From contig NEEC01000089.1 in assembly GCA_002189035.1 (NCBI GenBank), positions 1-35,972 of the forward strand: a stretch of 35,972 nt of DNA. Direction: 5' to 3'. Position 1 is the stretch's first letter; every line of letters begins with the position of its first letter. The position numbers and the translations under genes were made by a program. The notes under the pieces are model-generated. The model made no database searches, was not told the DNA's origin, and saw only the letters and a program-made list of their open reading frames with translations. This DNA comes from Utricularia gibba (taxonomy: Eukaryota > Plantae > Magnoliophyta). This document shows positions 8,576 through 32,655 of the stretch, piece by piece.

Positions 8576-10059
8576 TCAATCTGCAGCAGCCCAAATCAGA
8601 TCGTTCTGGAAGATCCAATGGCAGACCTCTGTCTTTCCCGGGCTGGAGCGCAGTGCCTGGAAGGCTGCGTGGTCGGGGCTCCAGGAAGAAGTATCCTCAT
8701 GGCAGATGGCAACGCCATGGTTAACCTGGGACTTCGTTTTGGGATCCAGGATGTCGGCTTCGTAGACCCGGACGCCATTGACAGAGTGGCAGTAGTAGAG
8801 CAGGTATGGATAGAGTGTCTGATGACACGAGACTGAGTTGGTCACTTCTCCACCATTGATCCCTTTCACGTCTCCCAGTAAGATCACGCCATTGGAGCCG
8901 GCCGGGGTATCCATGGTTCGAACTTCCGCGTTTCGGCCCAGGATGAAGGTGGCGAAGTCGATCATGTCCTCGATCGACGCCACGCACCGCTTGGTTTCGC
9001 CTCGGTTGGGGACACGCTCGCAGCCCTGGGTCGCGTCGGAGATTATTTTGGACATGCTTGAGTCATTCGCAGCGTGAAAAATAGTTCTGATTTCGGAGAT
9101 CTTGGAGGAGGCGAAGGGCAGCTTCGAGACGATGGCGCGGGGCAAGAATGACCTTCTGGGCTTCTGATCGATAAAATCCGGCATCCGCAACTGGGTACCG
9201 GGTTTCAACATGGCCTCCCGGAAGAATATCCCCGGCGGCGGCGCCGGCTTGTTTATCCCCTTATAGCCTTCGAAGTCCTTGTGGTAGTGGTTGTATTCTT
9301 TGAACTCCGGAGGAAAGTCCGCCGGAGGCTTTTCATGTCCCTATTCAGAACACAGCTTTGCACTTTAAGTACAAATTAAACAAAAATATTTGTCAAAAAA
9401 TAATTAACTAAATTCATTTCGCTATTATAAATTATTATTTTATTAATATTTAAATTTGAATTTTGTAATAAATGCACGATTTCAACGTGTTTACCTCTTT
9501 ACTGCCTCCCTTTTGGTTGTATGTCTGGAATTGAGGCGTTTTATTTTCCTGTTTTAAAAATAAACATGCTCAAGAAAACAGAAGGAATTAAAAAATGAAT
9601 TTATACACAAGCTGCTTTTTACCTTTTGATCTTCCAGTTCTGGGGAGTCCTCGTGGTGTTTGAAACACATGAGGTTCGCCTGTGCGCAGAACACCGGCAG
9701 TCGTTGCGACAGGGCTTTCGGGTCATCGGCAATCTTACGGAATTCGGCGAACTGCGCCGCCGTGAGCGGTGACGCCTTATCCAGCAAGAACCCCGAGAGC
9801 GGTGCATCGTTGGTGACATGCTTTTCCCAGTAACTAAACAGATAAGCTTTAGGCGTCGACGGAATTTTCTCTCCTCCTCCGGCGACCCTTCCCACCTTCA
9901 GGATAATATTTGTGTTTTGGTTAAACACCGTGCAACTAGTTGTGCAACTAACAGATGAGCAAAGCGTGGAAGCTTATGATTCCTTACATGGGAAATTAGA
10001 GGTACGGCGAAGGCCAACAGCCACATCAGGCGGCGGTGGAGTGGATGATCAGACGCCAT
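8576..10059 (-). CDS. BURP copy A: PG1beta-derived BURP-domain protein, 369 aa; exons 10059-9988, 9895-9623, 9340-8576
   Basis: Exon lengths 72/273/765, all phase 0, GT-AG. Signal-like MASDHPLHRRLMWLLAFAVPLISH; pro-region TPKAYLFSYWEKH...DKASPLTAAQF...FCAQANLMC; short core FKEYNHYHKDFEGY; BURP domain with CHQ, CHS, CHE, CHW intact. Confidence 0.85.
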
Positions 10060-10344
10060 AGCTGGGTGAAGAAATGAAGAAAGCAACTGAGCGTTGCTCG
10101 CGATAGGGTCTCCAATTAATTTGCTTTAGGTGGGGGGCAGTCTCCAAGGGCTGTCATGTCCTCTGTTGATTCTTGTCGCGAAGCCGGGCATTGAAACGTT
10201 GATTGCGCAGGTCACATGTGGCCATCATCATCCTCAATATCTCTTAAATATTTAATTCATTGATATTTTTAATCATACACCACATTGGGAGCTTGAGCTT
10301 TCAGTGAAGCAACACAAGACTTATTTATTTCTACATTCTTGCGC

Positions 10345-11906
10345 TCAGTCTGCAACCACCCATGTCAGATCATTCTGAAAGATCCAATGACAGACCTCGA
10401 TCTCACCCGGGGCGGAGCCCAGGGCGGCGAAAGCCGGATGGTTCGAGCTCCAGGAAGAAGTATCCTCATGACAAACAGCAACCCCATGGTTGATCTTGGC
10501 CTTCGTTTTCAGATCCAGGAGGTCGGATTCATAGACCCGAATGCCATTAACGGAGTGGCAGTAGTAAAGCAAGTAGGGATAAAGGGTTTGATGGCACGAA
10601 ACGGACTTGGTCACTCTTCCACCGTTGATTCCTCTGACGTTACCCAGTAGCACCGTGGCATTGGAGCCTGCTGCTCCATCCATGGTTCGAACAACCACGT
10701 CTCGGCCAAGGACGATTGTGGCAAAGTCGATCATGTCCTCGATCGACGCCACGCATCGCTTCGTCTCGCCCTGGTTAGGGGCTCGCTCGCAATCCTCGAT
10801 TGCCTCCGTGAACATTTTGGACTTGCTTGAGTCGTCTTGCGCGTGAAAAATAAACTTGATATCGGATATCTTGTCGGAGGAGAACGGCAGCTTAGAGATG
10901 ATGCGGCGCGGCAGAAATGACCTTATGGGCTTTCTGTCTATGAAGTCCGGCATGAGGATCGGGGCCCCGGATTTCAGCGTCGCCTCTCTGAAGAATATGC
11001 CCGGCGGTACCCGCTTGTTGCCGTCCGCGTCCTTGAGGTACTCGTTGTAGCGTTTGAATTTGGTGCCGGAATATATCGGCTTTTCCGGCTGTCCAAAATA
11101 ATGTACCAATTTTAAAATATGAAAAAAAATGCATTTTTTTTCCAAATTAAAGTCATTTTCAATAATCTGCAGCATAATTTCAATACCTTCTTAGGACCTC
11201 CTTTATTGTAATTCTGGAAATCGACATCCAGTAATTCTGGTTTTATATTTTCCTGATAATAAATGGAAGAAAAATAATTCAAATAAGAATAAATGTTTTT
11301 TTCTTACAAAAAAAAATTATTTATTTTAAATTATAAAATTAAATCCTGTAATTACTTCCATCAGCTGAAGAAGAAACTTCGTTTGTTACCTTTTGATTTT
11401 TCTGAGAGTCGCCCCTGCGATACTCGTTGTAGAGAATGAAAGCGATAACCAAGGATGTGTTCTTAACACTTTCCACAGAATCGGGAAAGCACATGAGGTT
11501 AGCCTGTGAACAAAGCTCCGGCAACCGCTCCGACAGGGCTTTCGGATCATCGGAGACCTTTAAGAACTCAGCGTACTGCGCCGCCGTGAGGGGCGACGCC
11601 TTATCCATCAAGAACTCCGATTTGGGTAAGCCACCAGCGACATGCTCTTCCCAGTAACGAAGGAGATAAGCTCGAGGAGTTAACAGATGATCCTCGGGTT
11701 TACCAGAATGAACTCCTCCACCTACCCTTCCCACCTGCATCCATTATCACAAAGAAAAGTAAGCTACTTCACTCAGTCCAGGAAACAAAACCGAGTTCGG
11801 GATCTCTCACGTTGGAAATTAGAGCGAAGACGATGACCACCGTCGACAAGTGGAGGCGCCACTGACGAGAAGCGGCGGGTGCCGCCGAGGAGGTTATGGG
11901 AAGCAT
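10345..11906 (-). CDS. BURP copy B: PG1beta-derived BURP-domain protein, about 394 aa; exons 11906-11811, 11734-11390, 11088-10345
   Basis: Exon lengths 96/345/744, phase 0. Cores FILYNEY (exon 2) and FKRYNEY (exon 3); four CH motifs intact. The last acceptor (ggacag|CCG at 11088) is inferred from frame. Confidence 0.8.
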
Positions 11907-11956
11907 CGCTGTGAGAAGAAGATGGAGGGTGGATTTCACCGAGAAACAACCTTTTT

Positions 11957-11962
11957 TTTATA
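11957..11962 (-). promoter_or_regulatory. TATA box of BURP copy B
   Basis: TATAAA about 50 bp upstream of the ATG; a similarly placed motif precedes copies C-F. Confidence 0.55.
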
Positions 11963-12178
11963 ACTCCTGGCGGCCGGCGGTACAGGAGATTGCTAAATAA
12001 TTTTTTAAAAAATTTTCAACCCAACATTCCCTATTTTAAAATTATGGATCTAATTCGAAGTTATATTTAAATTAATAATTTTACTTCTACTCAAAAAATA
12101 ATTAAAAAAATATTAAATATAACACACTTCATCATAAAAAGAAATATGGTACGGCGTCACGGCGTCACATCCGCCTGG

Positions 12179-12282
12179 CCCGACACAACTTTATAGGGCA
12201 CGTGGTTCAAAAATATAACAAGCTCCTTTCTTTCCTTATCTCGTGACCCGACACAACTTCATAGGGCACGTGGTTCAAAAAT
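12179..12282. repeat. Direct repeat, 2 x 36 bp, each copy with a G-box (CACGTG)
   Basis: cccgacacaact(t/c)atagggcacgtggttcaaaaat at 12179-12214 and 12247-12282 (one mismatch). Confidence 0.8.
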
Positions 12283-13535
12283 GCATAACGTATTAATACA
12301 AAAATTGAGAATTAAAAAAAATTAAATATGCGGTAAAATTTGATGGAATTATTTGAAATTTAGATATCATTACTATAATGTAGTGTGTTATCAACGTGAG
12401 AGATGCTTTATATCAAGATTCCATTATTTAGTGTTTGAAAATGAATTGGGTCCCACCAATAAAAAATAGTGAGCCGCCACAAAATATGTGGCGCCCAAGA
12501 TAGTTAGACTGGGCCCATTCAGGGACAGAGAGCGTGAGCCTGGCCCAGTCCTTGGTTTGTCGCGTGATGCATTCGAATCGAGAAATATGTGATTTCATTA
12601 TAAAAAGGAAAAATATGTATTTATAAATAATTCACTATTAATAGCTCAGAAAATTATTTTTTTAAAGTTTCTATTCTGTACAGAAATTTATATTCTTATT
12701 TGTATTCAAGAAAGTATTAGTATTTGTTTTATATTTTTTAATAAACTGTATAATGATGTGGGTTTATATAGGCGTAGGGTGAAGTATAAAAATGGCCACT
12801 GTCTCGTTTACTTATTAGAAAAGTGGCCGTAGTGTAGTTTTCATTATAAAAATTGCCATCATCTTTGGAATTAAATAAAGAAAAAAATGTATATGATTAT
12901 ATGCTGTATTCTATGAAATAAATAAATGTTTTCACTTTCAAAAAATAATAAATAATTTAAATTAAAAACATAATTCAAATAATTTTATATCAATCATTAT
13001 CTTTCAATAGTTTTTCAAATGGAATATCTAAGTATAAAATTGTCAGAATCATGATTCTTCACATTTTAATTCATTTTTAAAAGTGGATTTTTTTGAAAAG
13101 TTTATATCATTTTGGATAAATTTATAATAAAAACTTAAAATAACAATTATTTAAAAAACATGATTTAATTTAGATTTATATTTAGTCATATATTAAGGAA
13201 ACTTACATGCATTAAAAAATTTAAAATGTGACTTTCTAATTTATATACATACAGTATAAAAAATTTTAGATATTTAAATATTTTTGTTAATAATTGAAAC
13301 ACTTGAAAAGATTCTATTGTCTGAAATTTAGTAATTATTAATAAACTGAATGAATATTATTATGTAATTATTTTAACTATAATAAGTTTAAATATAATAT
13401 ATACGTATATGTTATTTTTAAAAAAAATAAAAAATCATATATATACATATTGACATATATTGTATCTATTTTTAAAATTGAAATGACCAATTTTATAAGA
13501 AAAAACACACACTGCGTGCTTTTTCTAATTAACTC

Positions 13536-13820
13536 AATCCTTAAGCGACGTTTCAGAATCGTTTGGAGACCTATTGGCTACGCCCGATACTGAAAAGCCG
13601 TTTGTCGTCTCTCTATGCCCCTTGCTGTCATCGCATGTACTCATTCGCATACTTTTCAAAATGTGTGTTCTCTGACTGGTGATCCTGACGGATTGGAGGG
13701 CCACGGCGGCGGATCGGAAAAGAGCAACACGACGGAAGCTGCAACCCATCTCGTAACCTGCCAACCTGCTTCTCTACTTTGTGGAACATAAAGAGCAGGA
13801 GAGACTAACGTTTATGAGTC
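13536..13820. repeat. Duplicated intergenic island II, copy 1 (also about 17768-18200, 21483-21930, 27525-27870)
   Basis: Shared blocks such as aatactgaaaagccgtttgtc and ggaaaagagcaacacgacggaagctgc recur once per duplication unit. Boundaries are approximate. Confidence 0.75.
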
Positions 13821-15526
13821 ACGATTCTACGCTCACGGGTCGACATGGAAACCTCGACATGGTGAGTTAGGGTTGATGAGTTGAAGCCTTTGACTCGATA
13901 CTAACTCTAATTGATCCATTTTATTTAATTAAAAAATAGCTTTTAAATTAAAAAAATCATATAAAATCATCATAAAAAAGAAATATAAAATATAAATTTA
14001 AGTCTTATATGATTTTAAATTTTCTATCCTTATTATTCCAGGGTTAGATTGGTAATGTAAAATATCCATGGAGTTAAAAACTTTTTTTGGTTAGTTATAT
14101 TCAAAAAAATAAAAAAGGCAAAACAAAATAAAGATAAATTTATTGAGTTTTTGAGGAGGATGCTTCATCATTCTCATTCACAAAGAAATTTCGTAATCTT
14201 CGATCCTCAGCAAACCAGTGTTTTGGACAAATACAAGCTTCTAGGGTTTCAAAACAATTAATAGACACAAAACAAAAAAAATTAAGAAAAATAGAATCGA
14301 AAAAGAAAAAGAAGAGAATAATGGTTGACAGTTTCAGAATCAAAGGTTCAAATAAGAAACTGTAGTTGTTGTTTATGATCGTTTAACCAAGAGTGAAAAA
14401 TCACTAACTAAGTTTAATGAAGAATTAGGTTTAACCACTGGCTCATTAGTCGAAACCCTAATTTTTTGTGAAAAAATTAAATGAACCTTAATATAGGACC
14501 AACTCCCCGAGTCGACCCTAAATCGTGTTTCTCAACTAGGTATAACTAATTGTAGTTATAAAAACCGATTTTCGATATCATCAAGTTTGTATTTTAATTT
14601 TACCAAAAATTGAAAAAAAAATAGAATTTTCAGGATAAATAATATGAATTCATAATTTATATAAGGATTTTAAATTTTTTATATAAATAATTTAAATAAC
14701 ATTAAAATATATATTAATGTTTATTAATTTTTTAAAATATTGTATTCATTATATGGTAGGTCCATGAGTGGATACCGTCAGCCCAACTCAATAAATAATC
14801 TGGTTAAAGCCATATTAATTATTTTTTTATGTAATCATACTTTAGCATGATCCTAATTTAAAACTTGGCGAAGACCCATTGATATAGAATCGGGCCGGCC
14901 TGGCCCAACTTTCGTTTCTAAAACCTAGAGATCTCATTTTTACAAATTATTTTTGTTGAAATTAAGAATTCAACCATTTTGTACACTATAAACCTAAATA
15001 CATAAGAAGCAGAAGCGTATATCATATTATAAAAGATTTGATCCAATCAATTAATATTAATCTACAATTTAGTATACACTTGATTATTTAATTTTTCAAG
15101 TTAAGATACATAATTATTTGTTCTAATAATTTCCAATGATTTCAACCTTTATGACCTGCCCCCACCCATTGTGAAACAATTGACTCTCTCTTTTCCTTTA
15201 TGTGTTTCGATGGGGGATCTCAACCCTAGAATTAGGGATTTGGTTGTGAAATTAAGATATTCATTTCGAAATCTTAAATACATAGGCATCGGGTGAATCC
15301 CTGCAGCCCTAAGGGAGATCAGTAGATACCAAAAGCAAGCATTGATATTGATTAACACATATATTACAAGATGACAAGATGACCAGATGACCTGGTTTCC
15401 ACGTTGGAATCCAGCTGAAACACAAAGCAAGAGCCACACCACATGGTTTCCTTCCAACACATACAACGAAGGAAACCACTCTTATTCTGACCGAGACGGT
15501 CTCCATACTTTCACTTCTTCCCCTGC

Positions 15527-16727
15527 TCAGTCTGCAATGACCCACATCAGATCGTTCTCGAAGATCCAGTGGCAGACCTCGATCTTCCCGGGACTAGACC
15601 CCAACTCCGCGAACGCAGAGTGGTCGGCGCTCCAGGAAGAGGTATCCTCGTGACAGATGGCCACCGCATGGTTGATCTTGGACTTGGTTTTTGCATCCAG
15701 GATATCGGCTTCATAGAGGCGGATGCCGTTCACGGAGTGGCAGTAGTAGAGTAAGTAGGGATACAGGCGCTGGTGGCACGAAACGGACTTGGTCAATCTC
15801 CCGCCATTGATGGCTTTCACATCACCCAGCAAGGCAGTGGTGTTGGATCCGGCCTTGGTGTCCATTGTACGGGCGACCACCTTCTGGCCCAGCACCTGCG
15901 TGGCGAAGTCCACCATGTCTTCGATCGACGCCACGCACCGCTTCGTCTCGCCCACGTTGGGTTCCTGCTCGCAGTCGTCGAGTGCGTCGGTGAACATTTG
16001 GGTCCTGCTTGGGTGATCTCCGGCGTGGAAGATCTTCTTGATATCGGCCAGTTTGGAGGAGGCGAAGGGCAGCTTTGAGACGATGGTGCGCGGCAAGAAC
16101 GACCTGGCGGGGTTCTTGTCGGTGAAGTCGGGCATGGTTATCAGGACGCCGGGCTTCAGCGTCGTTTCCCTGAAGAACATCCCGGGGGGAAGCCAATTGG
16201 TAACCTTTTCATTCTCGCCCAGGCCCTTGATGAAGCGGCACGAACGACCAAAGAATCTATAATAAAATTGATACGAGAAGCAGCGGCGACGTTGGTCCAA
16301 CGTCTTCTCGGTGTCGCTGTCGGCGGAATTAGGTAAGCACATAATGTTGGCCTGTGAACACAGCTCCGGCATGTGCGCCGACAGGGCGTTCTGATCGTCG
16401 GCGATCTTGTTGAAGGCGGCGTATTGGGCGGCGGTGAGCGGGGACGCCTTATCCATCAGAAACTCGGACTTGGGTAGACCGCTGGTGACGTGCTTCTCCC
16501 AGTAGCTCAGGGCATAAGCTTTGGGCGTCAACGGGTTCTCAACTCCGATAACCCCGACCACCTTCAATCGTTAAATACAGAATAATGCTTGGGTTTTGGG
16601 GAAGCCGCAGTAAAGGAAAAAGATTTCTTACATTGGAGACCAGAACGGAGGCGAGAATGCACAGCCACGTGAGCCGGTGTTGAAGCGGCTGAGGAGAAGT
16701 GGCGGCGGCCGCGGATATGGGAGACAT
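15527..16727 (-). CDS. BURP copy C, 376 aa; exons 16727-16632, 16561-15527
   Basis: 96-bp signal exon plus a 1035-bp exon in one ORF. Core RRRCFSYQFYYRFFGRSCRFIK; four CH motifs intact. Confidence 0.9.
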
Positions 16728-16793
16728 CGCCGACTGAAAAGGAGAGGGGGAACCGAGTGAGGATGCAGGATTAGAGTAGAAGAAGCACCTTCC

Positions 16794-16799
16794 TTTATA
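16794..16799 (-). promoter_or_regulatory. TATA box of BURP copy C
   Basis: TATAAA about 67 bp upstream of the ATG, conserved in copies D and E. Confidence 0.55.
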
Positions 16800-16959
16800 G
16801 GCAAATGGCGGCGGCTGAGTGCATTGCATGGAGAAATGGACATGTGATTGATAATCCATAAATTGTCCAACTAAATCAAGAACCAATATGCACAAAAGAC
16901 GATCATTTGGAAGTCAACATCCGATGGCCAACACTTTTGGGAATCTTTACATTAAAACC

Positions 16960-17320
16960 ATAGGGATTGTGCGTGGTTCTGAAGTGCTGCTGTTTATCAT
17001 TAACATCAGGTTCCAATCAAGCGAAGACCCGGTCATGGAAATGTCCAAATGGCTGCTCCCCACACGCCACCACCTTGTAGCTGGCTGTCTGTAGACTGAG
17101 TCCACATGAATTGGAGGATCTGTGAGGATAAGGCAAGTGGAATGCCATGCCACCATTATTGAACTGGGATCTGTGCGGATAAGGCAAGTCTTTCTACGAC
17201 GCTGAGGCAAGACTTCCAGCAACTGCATCAGTTGAAGGTGGATCATTTCTGCTTTTTTAAGTTGGAACTCAACCCCAATATCCGATGGATCGGATGAGCT
17301 CAAGGTTAAGCACACAAAAA
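16960..17320. repeat. Duplicated intergenic island I, copy 1 (also about 20940-21290, 26545-26870)
   Basis: Shared blocks ggttctgaagtgctg, gcgaagac...ggaaatgtcca, ccattattgaactggg and gcaactgcatcagttgaaggtggat. Boundaries are approximate. Confidence 0.75.
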
Positions 17321-17767
17321 ACTTGTATCACAATCAAAAAAATTAGGTCAAACTTATTAATATTAATATGTAATTTCTTGTATAATTAATTATTTTATTT
17401 TTCAAATTCTATGGTATTGCTTTTTCTAATAAACACCCTCAAGTCAAAGTAATTTTCAATGCGGTGAATACTTGTTTTTTTTATTGTACGTAGTGCCCAA
17501 ATCATGAATTGATCTAATTTTTATCAATTAATTATAATGTATCTTTTTATTTTTTTTAGCAGAACTGAGATCAACACAAAACCCATTTTGATCATCTAAT
17601 GTAAAACAAACATTTTGATATGAAATTTAAGATGTGATGAATCGTACTTAAAAAAAATATGAATCATATTAAAAAAAGATTAAATCAAATCGATTATTAG
17701 TGATATTAAATGTTTTAAATATTTAAATATTTTATTTTATTTAGTATTACTTATTATAAATACAAAT

Positions 17768-18200
17768 TAAACCAGTGGGTTGGTTTCCTTACAGTGCCTC
17801 TTGGGGCACCCCCTTCTGCAAACTCTGCTCCTGGCCATGGAACGAGTTGGATCTGCTGCAGGTGCCAATGCTTCTCCGACGTTGTAGAATCGTTTCGATA
17901 CCTATTGGCTGTACCCAATACTGAAAAGCCGTTTGTCCTGTGTGCATACCCCTTGTTATCATGACATGAACTCATTCACATATATTTCAAAATGTGTATT
18001 CGCTGATTGCTGAGGGCCCTGGCGGCTGATCGGAAAAGAACAACACGACGGAAGCTGCATTCCCATCTCGTAACCGGCCAAACTGCTTCTCCCTCAGTGG
18101 AGCATACCGAGTAGGAGATACCTACGCTTCTGATGTGCATAGCCCAACCACACCAGCTGGATTTTCAATTTGTTTATTTGTCATGTGACCGTGCCTATCT
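17768..18200. repeat. Intergenic island II, copy 2
   Basis: Closely similar to 21483-21930, with flanking AT-rich DNA also aligned. Confidence 0.8.
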
Positions 18201-18944
18201 GCTGTAGTTTTTTTTAAAAAAAAATCAATCAATTTTGAAAATTATTTAAAACATTATTTCCATTTTCAAAATACTTCAACTTTTGAAAGTTATATACTCC
18301 TATTCTATTAATTAAAATTCATCATTTCAATTTCGATAGAAATAAATTATGTTTTTAAAAACATATATTTCATTCTCAAATTTCGAAAAACTTAAATTTA
18401 AATAATTAAGTGTTTTTATGAAATTCATAGTTTTAAATATATATTAGAAATATATTTTAAAAAAATTAACTTTGTGTTATAGGCAATTGTCAAACCAATT
18501 TATCGCCACTCATTCATTTTGTTTATTGATTGAACATTTTTATTTTAATTTCACCAAAAATTAAAAAATAATCCTTGAATTTAATTTATAAAAACTTGTG
18601 ATCACCCTATGCTTGGCACTTTGCAATTGTTTAATGAGTTTTAAATACATTCGATTAATTTTTTACATATATGATGCGTAATTTTTTCACATAGTTAACA
18701 GACGATGACTACTTTTTCTAATTTATTCGATTATTTCATTAGGGTGCCAAGACAAGCCTTGGTGTATATTATGTTGTGTAGATGGGTGTGACCGGAAGCA
18801 AGCATTGATACTAATTCACACGTTCGAATCCAACCGAAACAGAAAGCAAGCGCCACACCACATGGTTTCCTTCCGACGCATACAACGAAGGAAACCACTC
18901 TTATTTACTTTCTTGCACCCTATTCTTTCATCTTCTCCCCCTGC

Positions 18945-20154
18945 TCAGTCTGCAATGACCCACATCAGATCGTTCTCGAAGATCCAGTGGCAGGCCTCGA
19001 TCTTGCCGGGACTGGACCCCAACGCCACGAACGCCGAGTGGTCGGCGCTCCAGGAAGAGGTATCCTCGTGACAGATGGCCACCGCATGGTTGATCTTGGA
19101 CTTGGTTTTTGCATCCAGGATATCGGCTTCATAGAGGCGGATGCCGTTCACGGAGTGGCAGTAGTAGAGTAAGTAGGGATACAGGCGCTGGTGGCACGAA
19201 ACGGACTTGGTCAATCTCCCGCCATTGATGGCTTTCACATCACCCAGCAAGGCAGTGGTGTTGGATCCGGCCTTGGTGTCCATTGTACGGGCGACCACCT
19301 TCTGGCCCAGCACCTGCGTGGCGAAGTCCACCATGTCTTCGATCGACGCCACGCACCGCTTCGTCTCGCCCACGTTGGGTTCCCGCTCGCAGTCGTCGAG
19401 TGCATCGGTGAACATTTGGGACATGCTTGGGTGATCTCCGGCGTGGAAGATCTTCTTGATATCGGCCAGTTTGGAGGAGGCGAAGGGCAGCTTTGAGACG
19501 ATGGCACGCGGCAAGAATGACGTTGCGGGGTTCTTGTCGGTGAAGTCGGGCATGGTTATCAGGACGCCGGGCTTCAGCGTCGCTTCCCTGAAGAACATCC
19601 CGGGGGGAACCCAATTGGTAACCTCTTCATTCTCGCCCAGGCCCTTCTTGATGCCGCACTTAGGACGACCCCTGAATCTATAATAAAATTTATACGTGAA
19701 GCAGTAGCGGCTGAAAAACTTGTCAGTAGTGTTCTCAGTGACGCTGTCGGCGGAATTAGGGAAGCACATAAGGTTGGCCTGTGCACAGAGGTCCGGCATG
19801 TGGGCCGACAGGGCGTTCTGATCGTCGGCGATCTTGTTGAAGGCGGCGTATTGGGCGGCGGTGAGCGGGGACGCCTTATCCATCAGAAACTCGGACTTGG
19901 GTAGACCGCTGGTGACGTGCTTCTCCCAGTAGCTCAGGGCATAAGCTTTGGGCGTCAACGGGTTCTCAACTCCGATAACCCCGACCACCTTCAATCGTTA
20001 AATACAGAATAATGCTTGGGTTTTGGGGAAGCCGCAGTAAAGGAAAAAGATTTCTTACATTGGAGACCAGAACGGAGGCGAAGACGAACAACCACGTGAG
20101 CCGGTGGTGGAGCGGCTGAGGAGAAGTGGCGCCGGCCGAGGATATGGCAGACAT
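18945..20154 (-). CDS. BURP copy D, 379 aa; exons 20154-20059, 19988-18945
   Basis: Nearly identical to copy C outside the core. Core FFSRYCFTYKFYYRFRGRPKCGIKK; four CH motifs intact. Confidence 0.9.
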
Positions 20155-20219
20155 GGCCGATTGTAGAGAAGAGAAGAGGAACCAAGTGAGGATGCAGGAA
20201 TTGAAACGAAGCACCTTCC

Positions 20220-21930: not shown

Positions 21931-23494
21931 TGCAACAAAAGAAGAAAAAAATCAATTTTGAAAATTATTTAAAATATTATTTCAACTTTTTAAAATTATA
22001 TACCCTATTCTATTAATGAAAATTCATCATTTCAATTTCAATAGAAAAAAATATGATTTCACAAAAAATTAACATATAATTCATTCTCAAATTTCGAAAA
22101 AATTAAATTTGCCTTATAAGCAATTGGCAAACAAATTTATTGCCACTCATTTATTTTGTTTCATGAATTAAAAATTATATTTTAATTTCACAAAACATAA
22201 AAAAGAATAATCTGTGTATTTTAATTTATAAAAACTTGTGATCACCCTATGCTTGGTGCTAACCACTCTTTTAAATAATATATCTTTCATTTTATAATTA
22301 CACCTTTATCATCCACTTTGAAATTGTTTAATGAGTTTTAAATACATTCAATTTGATTATTTTAAATTAAGAAAAAGAAAAAAATGAAATAGTAAAATAA
22401 TGAAAAAATGATTGTTGGGAATAAAAAAAAATTCCTTCATGTTCATGAATTGAGAATAATTTTCTTTTTTGGTATCCCAATTTATAATTGTAATATTTTC
22501 TATTATCTATTTAAATTAGTAGTTATCTTGAATGTTTGATCTGTGGTGATTCCAATGGTTCCAAAAGGGTCCACATGCCATTTGAACATAAAGGAACTCT
22601 TATCATTTCCTCAGTTATATATTTATATTTGATTCTTTTTTATCAATAATTTTTTTCAATAAAGAACTAGATATATCAAACTACATAGTTATAAAGTTTA
22701 CAAATAACTTATCTTATACAATTTTTTAAAGTATGTAATGGATTAGTTATTTATTCGTGCCAATTCCGTTCATCGAGATACATGTAGCTGAATATTTATA
22801 TTTGATATATTTGACAACAATCATTAAAAATTGATTTTAATAAAATAAAAAATAGGTCTTTATGACGTGTGTGTTTAAATTTCTATGAAGTCATTTATGT
22901 TTGATAATAAAACTGATTTTAAAATATTTAAAAAAGTACTAACTATTTCTAATATAGGTATGCCCTATTGTGTGTTGCCTGACATTGTGAAGCAATTGAC
23001 TCTCTTTTTCTTTTTTTTAGGATGGCATATCGAAACCCTAAAATTAGGGATTTGATTGTAAAATTGGGAGGTTTATAACCAAATTTAGGGTGTATATATA
23101 GTGGCTGGCCGTAAGGAACATCCATATGTACATGTAGTGGCCATTAAGGGACTTTCCGCACTTATAAAAGTAATCATCCTAATTTTCAATCACACATATT
23201 ACGATTAATTTTTTTATATATATGATGGGTAACTTTTTCACATAGTTAATAGATGATGACTACTTTTTAAATTTATTTGATTATTTCATTAGGAGGCCAA
23301 GACATGCCATGGTGTATATTATGTTGTGTAGATGGGTGTAACCGAAAGCAGCATTGATACTAATTCACACGTTCAAATCCAACTGAAACAGAAAGCAAGC
23401 GCCACACCACATGGTTTCCTTCCGATGCATACAACGAAGGAAACCACTCTTATTCTGACCGGGACGGTCTCCATACTTTCTCTTCTTCCCCTGC

Positions 23495-26335
23495 TCAGTC
23501 TGCAATGACCCACGTCAGATCGTTCTCGAAGATCCAGTGGCAGACCTCGATCTTCCCGGGACTGGAACCCAACGAAACGAAGGCGGCGTGATCGGCGCTC
23601 CAGGAAGAGGTATCCTCGTGGCAGATGGCCACCGCATGGTTGATCTTGGACTTGGTTTTTGCATCCAGGATATCGGCTTCGTAGACGCGGATGCCGTTCA
23701 CCGAGTGGCAGTAGTAGAGTAGGTAGGGATACAGGCTCTGGTGGCACGAAACGGACTTGGTCAATCTCCCGCCGTTGATGGCTTTCACATCACCCAGCAG
23801 GACATTGGTGTTGGATCCGGCCTTGTTTTCCATTGTACGGGCGACCACCTTCTGGCCCAGCACCAGGGTGGCGAAGTCGACCATGCCCTCGATCGACGCC
23901 ACGCACCGCTTCGTCTCGCCCACGTTGGGCTCCCGCTCGCAGTCTCCGAGTGCCTCGGTGAACATTTTGGACATGCTTGAGTCGTCGCCGGCGTGAAAGA
24001 TCTTCTTGATATCAGGCAGCTTGGAGGAGGCGAAGGGCAGCTTTGAGACGATGGCGCGCGGCAGGAACGACCTTGCCGGCTTCTTGTCGGTGAAGTCGGG
24101 CATGGTTATCTCGGCTCCCGGCTTCAGCGTCGCCTCCCTGAAGAAGATCCCCGGCGGCACCCAATTGGTAACCTTTTTACTATCCCCCGTTTCCTTCTTG
24201 TAGTGGTTATAGCGCTTAAAGCGAATATCAGTGTCAACCCCTCGCTGTTAAAAAAAAAAGTTACCCTTCGGAATTTAACCATAACAACATTTTTTCCCAC
24301 GGTAAAAACTTTCTTACCGCAGCATCTACTTGGCTGTCCTTGTGGTAGTGGTTGATATCCACCAATTGAGCCGCGGTGAATTCCTGAAAGGAAAAAGAGT
24401 TAAAAAATTTCTATCCCTCTGCTTATTAAATTTCACCTCGGTTTACCTCTTTGTGTCCTCCCTTTTGGTGATAGTGTGTGAAGCTAATATCCGGCTTCAC
24501 TTCTTCCTGCTTAAACGATCAAAACAATTCATAAGCAGTAAAAAACTTTAGTCACCTTCGGGCAACCGGTTTACCTTCTTGTGGCCACCCTTTTGGTGGT
24601 AGCGTGAAAACCTGATATCTGTGACCTCGGGCTTCACCTCCTCTTCCTGTGAACATGAAGACCGGTAACGTTAAAAAAAAAAAAAAAGTAAAATCTTGTT
24701 GTTACTGTTAGAGGTTGGTATTTTTTAATTTACCTGTTTGTGACCTCCCTTTTGATGGTAATGGTTGAAGCTGATGTCCTTGACTGCTTCAGGCTTTATC
24801 TCGTCTTCCTGTAATAATATACAGTAAATTAGTTAAAATTCTTTTTTTAACCTTTAATATTCTTCCTTTTTTTAGAAAAATAATTATTTCTTAATAGAAA
24901 AAGCAACGAATTTTATAACTAATTTACCATTTTGTGGCCACCCTTTTGGTGGTAACGGTGAAAGCTGATATCTTGGACTGCCTCAGGCTTTATCTCGTCT
25001 TCCTGTAATAATATACTGTAAATTAGTAAAAATTCTTTTTTTTAACCTTTAATATTCTCCCTTTTTTTAGAAAAATAATTATTTCTTCATAGAAAAAGCA
25101 ACGAATTTTATAACTAATTTACCATTTTGTGGCCACCCTTTTGGTGGTAACGGTGAAAGCTGATATCTTGGACTGCCTCAGGCTTTATCTCGTCTTCCTG
25201 TAATAATATACTGTAAATTAGTAAAAATTCTTTTTTTTAACCTTTAATATTCTCCCTTTTTTTAGAAAAATAATTATTTCTTCATAGAAAAAGCAACGAA
25301 TTTTATAACTAATTTACCATTTTGTGGCCACCCTTTTGGTGGTAACGGTGAAAGCTGATATCTTGGACTGCCTCAGGCTTTATCTCGTCTTCCTGTAATA
25401 ATATACTGTAAATTAGTAAAAATTCTTTTTTTTAACCTTTAATATTCTCCCTTTTTTAGAAAAATAATTATTTCTTGATAGAAAAAGCAACGAATTTTAT
25501 AGTTAATTTACCATTTTGTGGCCACCGTGTTGGTGGTAACGGTGGAAGCTGATGTCCTTGACTGCCTCAGGCTTTATCTCGTCTTCCTGTAATAATATAC
25601 AATAAATTAGTAAAAATTCTTTTTTTAACCATAAATGTCTTCCTTTTTTAAAAAAACTAACTATTTATTAATAAAAATGAATTTTAAAATTAAATTACCA
25701 TTTTGTGGCCACCCTTTTGGTGGTAACGGTGGAAGCTGATATCCTTGGCAACAAGCCTTGCATCTTCCTGTTAAAAGAAGCGGGTAAAAGTAAATACATA
25801 TTAAAACAGTAAAAATTATTTACCCTTTCATTATGTAACGTTTTACCTGCTGGTGATCATCGGTAGATCGGGGCGGTAATGGTTGTAGCCGTGAAAATCG
25901 ATGTCCGACGTCTTCTCGGTGGCGCTGCCGGCGGAATTAGGAAAGCACATAAGGTTGGCCTGTGAACAGAGCTCCGGCATGTGGGCCGACAGGGCGTTCT
26001 GATCGTCGGCGATCTTGTTGAAGGTGGCGTATTGGGCAGCGGTGAGCGGGGACGCCTTATCCATCAGAAACTCGGACTTGGGTAGACCGGTGGTGACGTG
26101 CTTCTCCCAGTAGCTCAGGGCATAAGCTTTGGGCGTCAACAGGTTCTCAACTCCGATAACCCCGACCACCTTCAATCATTAAATACAGAATAATGCTTGG
26201 GTTTTGGGGAAGCCACAGTAAAGGAAAAAGATTTCTTACATTGGAGATCAGAACGGAGGCGAGGATGCACAGCAACGTGAGCCGGTGGTGGAGCGGCTGA
26301 GGAGAAGGGGCGCCGGCCGAGGATATGGCAGACAT
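23495..26335 (-). CDS. BURP copy E, 12 exons, about 603 aa if one 1-bp deletion near 25865 is corrected; exons 26335-26240, 26169-25847, 25767-25699, 25586-25512, 25392-25318, 25197-25123, 25002-24928, 24808-24734, 24646-24575, 24506-24447, 24383-24318, 24244-23495
   Basis: Nine mini-exons of 69, 75, 75, 75, 75, 75, 72, 60 and 66 bp. Each is bounded by cag|GAA and |gtaa, is phase 0 and is stop-free. The terminal 750-bp exon carries an intact BURP domain. Exon 2 is 323 bp, one base short of phase 0. Not supported by transcript data here. Confidence 0.75.
24734..25767 (-). repeat. Tandem exon+intron repeat with a 194-195 bp period inside BURP copy E
   Basis: Exon starts at 25586, 25392, 25197, 25002 and 24808. 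The exons at 25392, 25197 and 25002 and the two introns between them are nucleotide-identical. Confidence 0.95.
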
Positions 26336-26400
26336 GGCCGATTGTAGAGAAGAGAAGGGGAACCAAGTGAGGATGCAGGAACTGAAACGAAGCAGCTTCC

Positions 26401-26406
26401 TTTATA
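26401..26406 (-). promoter_or_regulatory. TATA box of BURP copy E
   Basis: TATAAA about 66 bp upstream of the ATG, same context as C and D. Confidence 0.55.
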
Positions 26407-26544
26407 GTGTCATTGGGCAGGCAGTGGCGGCTGAGTGCATTGCATGGAGAAATGGACATGTGATTGGTTACCCATCAATTATTGAAGAAAATCAAGAAAC
26501 TGAACATGCAAGAATACATGTATCCTGAGCCATGTTCCGCGATA

Positions 26545-27524: not shown

Positions 27525-27870
27525 GGATTGGTTTCCTCTACAATCCCTATCATAGCATTCTCTCCGGCGAAATCTGATGCAGGGCATGGAAATTGGAATG
27601 AAATGAACCTGCTGTAGGTGCCAATGCTTCGAGACCTGTAGCTAATACTGAGAATCCGTTTGTCGTGTCTGCATACCCATTTTTACGATGCAGTGAACTC
27701 GCACACAGATATTTCGAAATGTGTGGTCTTTGATCGGTGATCATGTGGGGAGTGGGCCCTGCCTGCCTATTGGAAAAGAGCAACACGACGGAATCTGCAA
27801 TCCTATCTCGTGACGAGCCAACCTGCTTCTCCTCTCTCAAGCTCACGGAGGAGGAGAGCCTTACGTTTCT
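27525..27870. repeat. Intergenic island II, copy 4 (diverged)
   Basis: aatactgagaatccgtttgtcg, ggaaaagagcaacacgacggaatctgc and ccaacctgcttctc blocks. Confidence 0.7.
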
Positions 27871-28956
27871 CTTGTACACAACACACACACACAACTTTTA
27901 GCACGTGTTTTCCAACCCGCCAGACCCAAAGATACCATCTTATATATACATTAAGTAGTGTTCTAAAATCTTTAGAATTTATTTTTACTTTTTTAAAACT
28001 ATTTTTTAAAAATAGAAATGATAATTAAAAGTAAATTATTAATTATTTTTTTAAAATTAACTTTTGTAATATAATTTCAAAAGTATTTTTTGATATAATT
28101 TCTTTTAAAATTGTTATTGTTCTATAACAAAATTATTTTTATTTTTAAAAAATAGAAATAAAGTTCAAAAATTTTACATTAACACTGTTTTATATTATAT
28201 TAAAAAATTTTAAAATTTATTATTTCACATTACTTTTAAGAATTTTCAATATAATAACTTTTCCTTCAAAATAAAATATTCAACTTAATAGTACATATTA
28301 ATATTGAATTAATTAATTAGATTTTTCGTTAATGATGAAATACAATATCATTTTTTTATTTCAAAATATTTTTTATTCAATTCTTTATTATAATATTTTA
28401 ATAATATTCTATATGAACACACAAATATTTATTTTTAAACTAGTTATTTTTATGTAAATTAATTACTATTTGATGATATGTCTTTTAGAAAATCGTTTTT
28501 GATAAGAGTATCTTTACTTATTTTTGGAAATGCTGACATTGGCATTTCCGAAAATTGAGTAATTAAGTTTCTATTACGTTTGTATTTATTTTCGGAAATC
28601 ATAATATTAAAATAATATTAAAATAAATATTATAAGCTACATTTTAAGCTATTTTAGGAATGAAATCAGGTTTTATTATTTTCGTTTCTAAAAAAAATAA
28701 GAAACAAATTTACTTATTTACGAAAACATTTGCCCTATTTTCGAAAAAATCACATCAATATTTACAAAAATAAATAAAGATGCTTTAATACATATTAAAT
28801 GTAAAAATTTAAGTTTTACAACTTTTTTAAAAATAAAAAATTACAATTTAAATGTCATTTATGTCTAGTCGTAATAAAAAAAACTCAGAAAATCAACCGT
28901 AAACCCTAAAAAACGCAAGAAATGAAATCGATTCCTGTAGGAGAAGAACGACACCC

Positions 28957-29147
28957 CATCCAACACTTTGGCTGCATACCCCCCGCCCGCCACCATTAGA
29001 ATCCAAGAACCGGAATTGATATCATCCAACACTTTGGCTGCATACCCCCGCCCGCCACCATTAGAATCCAAGAACCGGAATTGATATCATTCAAAACTTT
29101 GGCTGCATACCCTCGTCACCATTAGAATCCAAGAATCCGAATTGATC
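28957..29147. repeat. Tandem repeat, 3 x about 65 bp
   Basis: ccaacactttggctgcatacccc..cgcccgccaccattagaatccaagaaccggaattgatatcat starting at about 28960, 29026 and 29091. Confidence 0.9.
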
Positions 29148-30226: not shown

Positions 30227-30683
30227 TTTTTGTTTTCTACAAAAAATCTTCACTTGAACCCCCCTTTCCTCCTTTACTGTAATCTGAGTTTTTTGTCATG
30301 TTAATGTTTTGATGAGATGAGTTTTATCCCTTCGTACATGTTATGTTTTGTCCTGGCCCATATCCAAGGTCCAAGATACATAAGACATGACAACTCGAGA
30401 TGACACAAAAATAGAGAAAAAAAAATTCAAAAATGAATGAAAGCAAAGTCTATTTAAATAACATATAATTTAAAAATCTAATGTTATCCCATTTATAAGT
30501 ATTATTATATTTTTCATTAGGGTTTGACCAGAAGGGGAGCACGTGGCCTTTTGGGACATGATTGTGATATTTCATAGAGGTAAACCGACCATATAAGTCC
30601 ATACCATACCTTGTGCTATTAACACACGCACACGCACACACCAGGGGAAATAAGTTTGGGCCGGGTTCATCGGGCCGGCCCAT

Positions 30684-32655
30684 TTAATCCGCGACGACCC
30701 ATGTCATATCGTTCTCGAAGATCCAATGACACACTTCGATCTTACCCGGGCTGGGGCCCAAGGCGATGAAGGCCCCATGATCTGGGCTCCATGAGGAGGT
30801 GTCCAGGTGGCAAATAGCCACGCCGTGGTTGATCTTGGACCGGGTGTTCGGGTCCAGGATATCCGCTTCGTAGACCCGGACCTTGGGAACCGAATGGCAG
30901 TAGTAGAGCATGTACGGATACAGGCTTTGGTGGCACGACACCGACATCGTGACGTTGCCACCGTTGATCCCTTTTACTTCGCCCAGTAAGACTTGAGAGT
31001 TGGCGCCGGCGGTTGTGTCGGTGGAGCGTACCGTCACGCTCCGGCCCAACACGGACGTCGCGAAGTCGATCATGTCCTCGATGGACGCCACGCACCGCTT
31101 CGTTTCACCCGCACTCGGGGCGCGTTCGCAGTCGTGCAGCGCATCGACGGCCATTTTAGAAATGCTTGATTCCTCCCCTGCATGGAAAATCTTCTTGATC
31201 TCGTGCATCTTTGAGGATGAAAACGGCAGCTTCGAGACGATGCCGCGCGGCAAGAATGATCTTTTCGGCATCTTGTCTCGGATGTCCGGCATCGGCATTA
31301 GAGTGCCCTCTTTCAGCATCGCCTCCCTGAAGAATTTCCCCGGTTCCACCCATTTGCTTACCTTTGTTGCGTCCACGGATGCTGCCGGAGGTGAGCTGTC
31401 GTTGCGGTAACTGGAGAATGTGGTGGGGGTGGCCTTGTCGTACTCTTTGAACGTGTTGTTCACACCGTATATCTTGAAATCGACGGTTGTGGCCTTGGCG
31501 CCTTTGCCGTAGCCGGTGAATTTGTCGGTGCCCTCGTTGAAACTTTGGCCGTAATTCACGAATCCCAACTCCGAGCTGCTAGATCCCTTGCCGTAGGATT
31601 CGAAACTGTCATCCCCGACGTTGGATTGATTTCTGTAACTTTTGAAAGTATCTGAAGCACCGCTTCCGCCGGTGCCGTAGTTGCGGAAATTATTCTGCGG
31701 CACGTTGCCGTCGTCCCCGTAAGAGGTGAATGTATCATTTGCTTCTTTACCATGCTCCCCGTAGTTCCTGAAATTGCTGCCGATTACGTTGGATAATCCA
31801 CCTCCGTAGCTTGTGAATGTGTTGTCGATGTCGCTACCCTTCTTCCCGTAGCTAGCGAATGTCTGGTCTCCGGCGTTGGCTTCGTCGGAATAGGAGGTGA
31901 ATTGTTGATCCCGGTCATTGCCTCCATCGGAATAGGATGCGAATCTGAGATTGGGGTTGTTCGTTTGCTTGCCGTAATTACTGAATTGGCCCTCACCCCC
32001 GCCGGCGCTGGTTCCGTAGGTGTTGAAGTTCTGGTCCACGACGTTGGAACCAGTGGCGTAGGCCACAAAACCATCGTTGTGGTCGGTGGAGTCGCGACTG
32101 TAGCGCCGGAAAGTATTCACAACCACGTTACCGTTTTCAGAGTATTTCTGGAAAGCATCGGCTCCTTTTACGCGGCCATCCCCGTAGCTGGTGAAGTTCT
32201 GTTCCGTATAACTCGCGAAATTAACATCGGTATCATGCTTCGCCAAACTCGGCGACAGATCAGGGAAACACAAGAGCTTCGCTCGTGCACAGAATTCCGG
32301 CAATTGCGCCGAAAGCGCGTTCCTATCGCCAGCGATTTTACTGAAGGCGGCGTACTGCGCCGCCGTCAGCGGCGACGCCTTGTCAATCAGAAGCGCCGGT
32401 TTCGGTAAATCATTGGCAATCCGTTTCTCCCAATACCGTAGCAGATAACCTCTGGGTGTGAACGGATTTGAATCCGCCAGGCGTCTTCCACCGGATACCT
32501 GCAGCAAGCCACACAGAAATCAGTGAGGATTCATTCCGGATACCGAACTTAATTCCGTTGCTAACCTCGGAAATCGAAATGCAAGCGATGAAAAGGAAGC
32601 ACAAGAGCCGACGGGCCGGAGATGAAGCCGACGCCGCGTGGGAAACGATCCCCAT
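30684..32655 (-). CDS. PG1beta: BURP copy F: canonical polygalacturonase non-catalytic beta subunit (PG1beta/AroGP-like), 634 aa; exons 32655-32566, 32498-30684
   Basis: Signal exon, NPFTPRGYLLRYW pro-region, 21 FxxY motifs counted by hand (FASY ... FSSY), and a BURP domain with CHQ, CHS, CHL, CHW. Confidence 0.95.

Follow-up and report, generated by a model that had tools for sequence, protein, structure and literature searches.

PG1beta of tomato and AtPGL1-3 of Arabidopsis combine a signal peptide, a C-x6-C pro-region and, at the C-terminus, a BURP domain, and PG1beta-like proteins are defined by about 20 repeats of 14 aa, each starting with FxxY. The Arabidopsis AtPGL genes have two exons and 21 FXXY motifs (PMC4460304). 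In tomato and alfalfa, where PG1beta is known to associate with polygalacturonase or pectin, mature PG1beta is the central domain alone, and the Phe residues of its FxxY motifs carry a −2 Da modification (PMC5313189). We infer that the BURP domain modifies these residues; a demonstration was not found in the literature searched.

The fused autocatalytic burpitide cyclases AhyBURP (PDB 8SY2/8SY3), SkrBURP, KjaBURP and LbaLycA form a second comparison set. In these proteins, as in the genes described here, one polypeptide contains a segment rich in aromatic residues, either variable or repetitive, and downstream of it a four-CH BURP domain. However, their BURP subfamilies are different ones (USP-type for AhyBURP), identity in the structural alignment is only 22–24%, and the conserved pro-region of our genes is specific to the PG1beta subfamily. 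Tandem duplication of PG1beta-like, BNM2-like and RD22/USP-like genes has been described in several species (PMC6102523). The BURP family surveys did not report positive selection in PG1beta-like genes, and the portions considered here do not describe remodeled cores, mini-exon amplification or gene conversion (PMC6102523). Our reading of this locus, with a probability of roughly 0.55, is that the genes are a tandem family specific to this lineage and encode wall-protein precursors of the PG1beta type, whose payload is the central aromatic segment.

Array layout and gene models

The window, that is, the whole stretch of 35,972 nucleotides that was analyzed, comes from a plant of the order Lamiales and contains six neighboring BURP-domain genes (A–F) on the minus strand, from 8576 (stop codon of A) to 32655 (ATG of F). 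They encode BURP-domain wall proteins that are predicted to be secreted. The gene models and the matches to Pfam PF03181 in all six genes (E-values about 3e-62 to 8.8e-66, profile positions 1–215 of 216) agree with the original prediction of a six-gene array at these positions, sharing a signal exon, a C-x6-C pro-region and four CH motifs. In each gene the N-terminus encoded by exon 1 is hydrophobic (predicted signal peptide), a phase-0 intron common to all six follows this exon, and every pro-region ends in C-x6-C. The BURP domain, for which we used the criterion CH-x10-CH-x25-27-CH-x25-26-CH with an FF motif ahead, starts with G[IMK]FFRE and carries CH-x10-CH-x27-CH-x25-CH in all copies. Reading frames are intact as modeled, with GT..AG introns only. 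Rfam and tRNA scans of the window gave no matches. The features are as follows.

30684..32655, minus strand: gene F, canonical PG1beta-type, 634 aa; exons 32655-32566 (signal) and 32498-30684
32267-31341, minus strand: core of gene F, 21 FxxY
23495..26335, minus strand: gene E, 599 aa as modeled, 12 exons
26335-26240, 26169-25847 and 24244-23495, minus strand: signal exon, pro-region exon and last exon of gene E
25756/25767-25699, 25586-25512, 25392-25318, 25197-25123 and 25002-24928, minus strand: mini-exons 1–5 of gene E
24808-24734, 24646-24575, 24506-24447 and 24383-24318, minus strand: mini-exons 6–9 of gene E (nine in all, 58–75 nt)
18945..20154, minus strand: gene D, 379 aa; exons 20154-20059 and 19988-18945; core 19763-19602
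19703-19656, minus strand: Cys-flanked aromatic and cationic loop of gene D, CFTYKFYYRFRGRPKC
15527..16727, minus strand: gene C, 376 aa; exons 16727-16632 and 16561-15527; core 16336-16184
16282-16238, minus strand: loop of gene C, CFSYQFYYRFFGRSC
10345..11906, minus strand: gene B, 416 aa; exons 11906-11811, 11734-11390, 11252-11187 (mini-exon) and 11088-10345
8576..10059, minus strand: gene A, 387 aa; exons 10059-9988, 9895-9623, 9548-9495 (54-nt mini-exon) and 9340-8576

RNA contigs confirmed that A and B each have four exons as modeled, one of them a mini-exon of 54–66 nt. All three introns of A were confirmed in runs X25, X26 and X15, and all three introns of B were seen as GT..AG joints at word depths in the thousands, with deeper RNA cover for B than for A. 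This splicing and expression led us to reject pseudogene status for both genes. In runs X25–X28 the word share is explained by A and B exons with no further gene needed, so C is probably silent there; of the copies whose expression the original prediction asked to be checked, A and B are transcribed and spliced as predicted. Pseudogene status is unlikely for the rest, given their intact frames and low BURP-domain dN/dS. Between 0.51 and 0.54 of the 31-mers of E were present in RNA runs, which matches its exon share less the loss at junctions, and by this share E is probably expressed, in samples other than those with A and B. Within one study, the RNA samples containing E differed from those containing A/B. 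For gene E to stay in frame, mini-exon 1 must use, instead of the first AG, an acceptor lying 11 nt downstream of it (a predicted junction between exon 2 and mini-exon 1), and the phase of this junction makes E a possible pseudogene.

Core remodeling and phylogeny

The cores of A to F measure 68, 84, 51, 54, 274 and 309 aa, close to the sizes first estimated, and contain 3, 3, 0, 1, 10 and 21 FxxY motifs, respectively. Gene F had been called a canonical PG1beta with 21 FxxY, and exactly this number was counted, in a gene of two exons like the AtPGL genes; its best matches are Lamiales PG1beta proteins (70–71% identity). The other five have fewer than the roughly 20 repeats. Compared with tomato PG1beta and AtPGL1-3, A–D have just 0–3 FxxY, E has its motifs in separate mini-exons with a His-rich 25-aa period, and A, B and E carry extra introns.

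All six genes fell within a 24-row Lamiales PG1beta set (SH-aLRT 99). A–E formed one clade (100/100) with a long stem (0.53–0.68), attached next to F plus Genlisea, and monophyly of all six was not rejected (AU p = 0.405). A–E are hence PG1beta-like members by descent, with a non-canonical architecture. The tree of the array genes, (A,B,(E,(C,D))), does not bear out a stepwise replacement of the FxxY domain: it implies contraction in the common ancestor, followed by collapse in C/D and re-expansion in E, and FxxY is retained in A, B and E and, as a single motif, in D.

No protein closer to A–E than canonical PG1beta was found in the two protein libraries searched. Short PG1beta-like proteins with an architecture like that of A–E and cores of 30–127 aa do occur in Rhododendron vialii (isoforms), Salvia splendens, Trifolium, Dionaea, Acer/Xanthoceras, Lonicera and Melia, some of them with new tandem units or Cys pairs of their own. 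We rejected an old short-core subfamily including A–E, as short copies elsewhere nest with the long copies of their own lineage; these proteins are independent derivations, not orthologues, and PG1beta-like genes of other eudicots have repeatedly come to have short cores. A widespread known short-core subfamily had been named in advance as a finding that would speak against the original prediction. The architecture is indeed widespread, but through repeated derivations and not as a single known subfamily. The Dionaea and Trifolium-like short copies are genuine genes, each with an uninterrupted reading frame, and no further BURP gene was found within 10 kb of either locus (single gene each). 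A search for tandem arrays around the Salvia and Rhododendron proteins gave no records.

Mini-exon repeat of gene E

The E core (10 FxxY, 29 His) is built from nine mini-exon units that share one frame, and the mini-exons of A, B and E are one homologous FxxY unit. Part of the core region is a tandem repeat.

24726..25748, minus strand: tandem array inside gene E, with one mini-exon plus one intron as the unit; period 195 bp, 5.3 copies

Matches within this array amounted to 93% (TRF), and units 3 and 4 were 100% identical, exon and intron alike. Between the older units 6–8 and units 2–5, exons retained 56–87% identity, whereas intron identity dropped to about 30%.

Selection and gene conversion

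Among pairs of A–E, dN/dS was 0.13–0.37 in the BURP domain and 0.14–0.44 in the pro-region of all pairs but D–E, where a value of 1.51 came from just one synonymous and five non-synonymous differences. Both regions are under purifying selection. Additionally, of 140 columns with a conservation of 90% or more among other PG1beta proteins, 134 were kept and six were changed in all of A–E. The conserved, enzyme-like domains first proposed are thus intact and constrained in the five derived copies.

The A–B core, with dN/dS of 0.44 at dS of about 1.1, is under moderate purifying selection. Conversely, dN/dS of the C–D core was 1.36, which does not differ from 1 (Fisher p = 1), and positive selection on the C/D core is not demonstrable. 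The cores are still rich in aromatic residues, in line with the aromatic cassette once proposed. The core is not the sole fast-changing part, as the signal exon diverges equally fast (C–D identity 78%, dN/dS 0.88).

Sliding identity along the C–D genomic alignment revealed two tracts, beside which identity was 70–93%.

16403..16642 (D 19830-20069), minus strand: tract of C 100% identical to D, running from the last bases of exon 1 (16642-16632) through intron 1 and across most of the pro-region
15632-15931 (D 19050-19349), minus strand: second tract of C 100% identical to D

Tracts of 240 and 300 nt at complete identity point to gene conversion in the flanks of C, D and E. Since core dS is 3–4 times flank dS, the contrast between core and flank partly reflects this conversion, and for C–D it is inflated by it.

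These data bear on whether the core is a dispensable linker, with function residing in the pro-region and BURP domain and the central segment decaying or drifting under relaxed constraint, its aromatic residues inherited and not selected. The C–D core and signal-exon rates agree with a linker, as do the independent core shortening in Rhododendron, Dionaea, Sapindaceae, Trifolium, Salvia and others and the requirement of AtPGL3 for its BURP domain (PMC4460304). So do the in-frame indels that separate the C core from the D core, and a second B transcript form lacking, in frame, 84 coding nt (28 core residues). Variant transcripts showed three non-synonymous to one synonymous difference in the core and four to eight in the BURP domain. 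In the AlphaFold model of D (mean pLDDT 82.7), the pro-region and BURP domain were confidently modeled (pTM 0.82), and the core was a low-confidence excursion with pLDDT below 50, i.e., predicted disordered; this prediction and the shortened B form are as compatible with a tolerant linker as with a substrate. However, constraint on the A–B core, the far better preservation of mini-exons than introns in E together with the single frame of its nine units, and the retention in both C and D of the Cys pair and of six aromatic positions would not be expected of a linker, nor would cores free of frameshifts and stops, the E junction question aside. A dispensable linker is therefore conceivable but rather less than probable.

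Cores as possible peptide substrates

The original prediction saw a catalyst-plus-substrate family; spelled out, each BURP domain would cross-link Tyr to a residue two to three positions upstream in its own core and proteases would free diversified macrocyclic, burpitide-like peptides. The BURP fold matches that of the copper-dependent cyclase AhyBURP (phmmer E 1.3e-14, Foldseek E 6e-13), but fold and CH motifs, though conserved, are features of all BURP proteins and do not discriminate cyclases. Also in favor are the aromatic-rich cores, modeled as flexible and tethered beside the BURP domain, the expression of copies in different samples, and the C/D loops, in which the aromatic scaffold and Cys pair are conserved while polar positions vary. 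The C/D cores also carry F[ST]Y[QK]FY, whose spacing equals that of the bicyclic selanine core VLFYPSY; the rings of the latter join L2–Y4 and Y4–Y7, and YPSY has the i,i+3 spacing found in FxxY (PMC11253845). Yet this match could be a mere residue of FxxY ancestry. A recognizable burpitide core is a short motif with Tyr or Trp as its last residue, in most cases repeated and with Gln or Val as its first, and the known cores QPYGVGSW, QLLVW, VLFYPSY and others are absent from the array genes. Array cores contain FxxY, F-x-Y and Y-x-x-Y spacings and, among A–E, are repetitive only in E; apart from the 25-aa units of E, there are no short cores that recur between conserved flanking sites for recognition or cleavage. 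In the literature searched, cyclase activity is not shown for any PG1beta-type BURP protein, and the C–D core does not depart from neutrality. A peptide-cyclase family would fit the architecture but is unlikely, and a linker under weak constraint rivals it on equal terms.

The C and D loops, C-x13-C and C-x14-C, are rich in Arg/Lys and Phe/Tyr, and core pI is 9.1–9.2. The core ends align with the tail of exon 2 and the last exon of E, and the central 60 nt align nowhere there. Presumably such loops resemble hairpin antimicrobial peptides, and C and D, whose precursors are predicted to be secreted, might give rise to a cationic aromatic hairpin, closed by a disulfide, that travels within the BURP precursor and is set free in the wall. 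An atlas search with the D core gave no score above 0.61 and no likeness to a known peptide family, and AlphaFold confidence was low; we consider a hairpin peptide very improbable.

Proposed origin and significance

For the family of wall-protein precursors that we favor, the tree, intron positions and repeat structure suggest the following origin. An F-like gene (two exons, 21 FxxY) would have duplicated in place, and in the ancestor of A–E the FxxY domain would have shrunk to a few units, with two introns gained around one FxxY mini-exon. E would then have re-expanded by tandem duplication of the mini-exon and intron unit into its His-rich repeat, whereas C and D would have lost the mini-exon and introns, leaving a short cationic, aromatic loop between two Cys; gene conversion would have kept the flanks of C, D and E alike. 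The copies may be secreted precursors working like canonical PG1beta, in which the pro-region on one side and the predicted copper-binding BURP domain on the other anchor the aromatic payload, which would undergo oxidative modification at FxxY-type sites and, in some copies, excision. Paralogues would thereby supply payloads differing in length, charge and site of expression, with weakly constrained sequences. Two points weigh against a payload: AtPGL3 keeps its BURP domain, so release is not universal, and a core that tolerates a 28-aa deletion with dN/dS near 1 may have no function at all.

A bolder and quite doubtful extension is that PG1beta-type BURP domains are in-cis oxidases of FxxY-type motifs, the array then being a natural series in which the substrate domain was cut down and rebuilt, giving new modified peptides. 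If so, the −2 Da shift on FxxY Phe would be BURP chemistry, perhaps even in the form of a Phe-Cbeta-O-Tyr ether spaced i,i+3 as in the selanine YPSY ring. Example products would be a bicyclic F-x-Y-x-x-Y core in the C/D disulfide loop and the His-rich repeat of E, and a wall protein would be turning into a RiPP precursor family.

The array bears on the biochemical role of the BURP domain in the PG1beta class and on the −2 Da modification of FxxY. One locus here appears to combine intron gain in a repeat domain, repeat growth by exon-plus-intron tandem duplication, and gene conversion, which lends a hypervariable look to a segment of ordinary variability. With one canonical gene and five natural variants (0, 1, 3, 3 and 10 FxxY) in which the BURP module is otherwise conserved, the array offers a test set for whether the PG1beta-class BURP domain acts on its own central domain.

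Results and discussion

The six neighbouring PG1beta-type BURP genes, A to F, form a real array that is partly expressed. We found six sets of BURP-domain reading frames in the window, all on the minus strand, each matching the whole of Pfam profile PF03181 (E = 3e-62 to 8.8e-66). A tblastn search of the window with F, the canonical FxxY-rich copy, recovered exactly six copies each of the BURP domain and the pro-region, with no additional fragments of either. The stretch is plant DNA, with a G+C content of ~45–57% within genes and 19–35% between genes. Gene models were made from three-frame reading of the minus strand, with coordinates fixed by script; every intron of the six models has GT..AG ends, and there are 0 internal stops.

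PG1beta-type BURP genes of the array in window coordinates, with the length of the core (the segment between the pro-region and the BURP domain) and its number of Phe-x-x-Tyr (FxxY) motifs.
A: 10059..8576, minus strand, 4 exons, 387 aa; core of 68 aa with 3 FxxY
B: 11906..10345, minus strand, 4 exons, 416 aa; core of 84 aa with 3 FxxY
C: 16727..15527, minus strand, 2 exons, 376 aa; core of 51 aa with 0 FxxY
D: 20154..18945, minus strand, 2 exons, 379 aa; core of 54 aa with 1 FxxY
E: 26335..23495, minus strand, 12 exons, 599 aa as modelled; core of 274 aa with 10 FxxY
F: 32655..30684, minus strand, 2 exons, 634 aa; core of 309 aa with 21 FxxY

Common to all six copies are a signal exon followed by a phase-0 intron, a pro-region of 75–82 aa with C-x6-C at its end, and the pattern CH-x10-CH-x27-CH-x25-CH in the BURP domain. 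F resembles the Arabidopsis AtPGL genes, which likewise have 2 exons and 21 FXXY repeats (PMC4460304). The charge of the core varies widely among copies, with a pI of 4.8 in F, 7.1 in E (29 His), and 9.1–9.3 in B, C, and D. The gene models and motif counts bear out the array anatomy described in the original prediction, including the 21 FxxY motifs of F, but not its stepwise replacement of the FxxY domain, as A, B, D, and E still carry 3, 3, 1, and 10 motifs.

Two cell-wall genes are neighbours of the array, both on the minus strand: a pectin methylesterase inhibitor (PF04043; 51–563) and a PC-esterase/trichome-birefringence-like gene (PF13839; 1192–1921). A 65-nt tandem repeat (3 copies, 91% matches) lies between E and F (28957–29146). 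Another repeated element of ~150–230 nt, with no Rfam or tRNA match, stands ~1.1–1.6 kb upstream of B, C, and D (13535–13682, 17777–18013, and 21492–21728; 60–86% identity among these three copies), so upstream sequence seems to be part of the duplication unit. A similar reading frame alone hints at a possible fourth copy upstream of E (27550–27894).

In both trees, one of 126 PG1beta-like proteins and a careful second one of 42, A–E formed one clade (100/100) with a long stem (0.53–0.68 changes per site) and the order (A,B,(E,(C,D))). F paired with Genlisea, and all of A–F lay inside the Lamiales sequence set (SH-aLRT 99). Forcing A–F together cost 0.7 log-likelihood units (AU p = 0.405), so the data are compatible with a local duplication of an F-like ancestral gene. 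The dS of A–E versus F was saturated (0.9–1.8), indicating either an old split or a fast-evolving lineage. The best matches of F reached 70–71% identity (Genlisea, Sesamum, and Paulownia), and no protein nearer to A–E than canonical PG1beta was found in a 5.8-billion or a 1.84-billion-representative library, although the latter is clustered at 50% identity and cannot exclude closer relatives of A–E.

The mini-exon, a short FxxY-coding exon of the core, is homologous among A, B, and E and corresponds to a single unit (CAG/GAA..F-x-x-Y-x-Q-K-G-G-x-K-x/GTAA; slashes, splice sites), which argues that the 4-exon structure, with its two new introns, is ancestral to A–E. The C and D cores are alignable to E over the first ~45 nt (E exon 2 tail) and the last ~50 nt (E last exon), and their middle, which codes a Cys loop, does not align to E. 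The central payload of A–E would have contracted first and then been rebuilt in various ways. The start of B intron 2 (11381–11394), AAAAG/GTAACAAAC, resembles coding AAAAGGTTACCAAT (K-V-T-N) at 16206–16219 in C; a K-V-T-N coding stretch of this type immediately precedes the BURP domain of C, D, and E, where F has AAG GTT TCG. A duplicated coding AAG/GT that turned splice donor in B intron 2 would fit this resemblance.

In E, exon 2 has a phase 2 donor (25847/GT), in contrast to the phase 0-0 mini-exons. Splicing to the first acceptor (exon start 25767) disrupts the frame and brings a stop in mini-exon 2, whereas an AG lying 11 nt further downstream (exon start 25756) preserves the frame and was taken for the model. 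In another frame, exon 2 ends in phase 0 (..STDDHQQ/GT), so a single-nucleotide indel close to the C4 run (~25874), real or an assembly error, is also possible. A 195-bp unit of mini-exon and intron is repeated in tandem (5.3 copies). Exon and intron identity are alike in units 1–5 (0.77–1.0; units 3 and 4 identical), whereas units 6–8 versus units 2–5 have exon identities of 0.56–0.87 and intron identities of ~0.3. Judged from these identities, units 1–5 can be taken as recent and units 6–8 as old, and the retention of exons beside diverged introns in the latter points to constraint on the coding units.

RNA sequencing runs X1–X5 contained 0.51–0.54 of the 31-mers of the E region (23400–26400). 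The exon share of E is estimated at ~0.66, or ~0.55 once words at the 11 junctions are lost, and the observed 31-mer share is consistent with fully spliced E mRNA. Runs X25–X28 of the same study contained 0.21–0.23 of the 31-mers of 8500–18499, a span that takes in A, B, and C; with ~2600 nt in total, the A and B exons are enough to explain a share of 0.23, and C is therefore probably silent in these runs. The presence of E and of A and B in different samples of one study suggests different expression sites. Contigs of X25, X26, X15, and X29 on 8500–14499 had zero depth across intergenic 12100–14499, indicating that these runs are RNA. GT..AG joints in RNA contigs coincided with the three predicted introns of A (9896–9987, 9549–9622, and 9341–9494) and of B (76, 137, and 98 nt), covering the mini-exons of A (54 nt) and B (66 nt). 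Word depth was in the thousands for B and between tens and ~1000 for A. In X15 transcripts, the Phe of the FEGY motif at A codon 156 (window 9273) is changed to Ser; one of the three FxxY motifs of A is therefore not fixed.

A second transcript form of B has a joint from 11248 to 11470 that skips 221 nt, made up of the intron with 80 nt of exon 2 on one side and 4 nt of the mini-exon on the other. This takes out 84 coding nt in frame, i.e. 28 core residues, the FILY motif among them. The skip has GT..AA ends and a 5-nt microhomology (GGAAA), and no shift gives canonical ends on both sides. It was the sole B form in X15 and X29, whose contigs differ by ~2% from the window, whereas X25 and X26 contain it together with the canonical form. 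A deletion allele or a homeologue seems likelier than splicing.

Region-wise dN/dS (Nei-Gojobori) was 0.13–0.37 for the BURP domain in every pair and 0.14–0.44 for the pro-region except in the D–E pair, where a value of 1.51 rests on five non-synonymous differences and a single synonymous one. The A–B core had a dN/dS of 0.44 (dS 1.1). In the C–D core (51 codons; dN 0.213, dS 0.157), dN/dS was 1.36 and did not differ from 1 (Fisher p = 1). A neutral linker, that is, a core without function, explains most of the same facts as a weakly constrained payload does. Compared with its flanks, the C–D core showed far higher non-synonymous change (p = 2e-11) and also higher synonymous change (p = 0.03). 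However, C and D share 100% identical tracts of 240 nt (C 16642–16403, D 19830–20069) and 300 nt (C 15931–15632, D 19050–19349), beside which identity falls to 78–88% in exon 1 and 70–78% in the core (neighbouring segments overall, 70–93%). Likewise, the 5' part of E is closer to C and D (dS 0.02–0.06) than its BURP domain is (dS 0.21). Such an identity mosaic is typical of gene conversion among tandem paralogues, which would have homogenised the C–D flanks and would explain the contrast between core and flanks. The C–D signal exon is as diverged as the core (dN/dS 0.88). The predicted hypervariable core is thus overstated given the likely conversion of the C–D flanks and the equally diverged signal exon. 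The C and D loops agree at two Cys and six aromatic positions and differ at polar ones. A partial list of B transcript variants gave synonymous:non-synonymous counts of 8:4 in the BURP domain, 1:3 in the core, and 1:5 in the signal exon.

Among 140 columns that are ≥90% conserved in the other 121 proteins, 6 were changed in all of A–E, mostly conservatively. Only one relative has a solved structure, the copper-dependent peanut cyclase AhyBURP (phmmer E = 1.3e-14; Foldseek E = 6e-13, TM 0.63–0.68 by target). The AlphaFold model of D (mean pLDDT 82.7, pTM 0.82) is confident for the helical pro-region and the BURP domain, with pLDDT <50 at core residues 84–124; the modelled core may be a flexible segment that protrudes between the two parts of a single folded unit. 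Of the three domains of the PG1beta precursor, only the central one makes up the mature wall protein in tomato and alfalfa; every FxxY Phe residue identified carries a −2 Da mark, read by the authors as dehydro-Phe (PMC5313189). The BURP domain is retained by and required for AtPGL3 (PMC4460304). BURP cyclases join Tyr or Trp to a carbon 2–3 residues upstream, as in the cores of selanine (VLFYPSY; rings L2–Y4 and Y4–Y7) and arabipeptin (FLWGY; ring L2–Y5) (PMC11253845). FxxY has the i,i+3 spacing found in BURP cyclase cross-links, and the spacing of F[ST]Y[QK]FY in C and D matches that of the selanine core. No paper tying PG1beta or its −2 Da mark to burpitide chemistry was found in the literature searched; we infer that the two may be linked. 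The hypothesis that these genes encode peptide-cyclase precursors is compatible with a conserved pro-region and BURP domain around a weakly constrained payload.

Proteins of 329–462 aa with the same architecture occur in Rhododendron, Salvia, Lonicera, Dionaea, Oldenlandia, Cardamine, Melia, Trifolium, Acer, Dipteronia, and Xanthoceras. C-x6-C was locatable in 15 of the 21 short proteins, whose cores (30–127 aa) are mutually unrelated. Instead of FxxY repeats, Salvia splendens (P0051) has its own tandem unit, NKYYATEDRVRRD.., in about 2.5 copies; Rhododendron vialii (P0032/P0037) has its own 20-aa unit, KAFKVAGPAVQIGYGKSFNE, in one to four copies, with isoforms differing by one versus four. 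A Cys pair is present in one short-core protein, and the Dionaea and Trifolium-like short copies are continuous genes in genomic DNA. In the tree, each short protein groups with long PG1beta genes from its own lineage. Together with the unrelated cores, this indicates that shortening and re-invention of the PG1beta core are recurrent, rather than marking one known short-core subfamily, the counter-case raised in the original prediction. The Utricularia array is best read as a PG1beta family specific to its lineage, in which a conserved pro-region and BURP domain are combined with a weakly constrained central payload.
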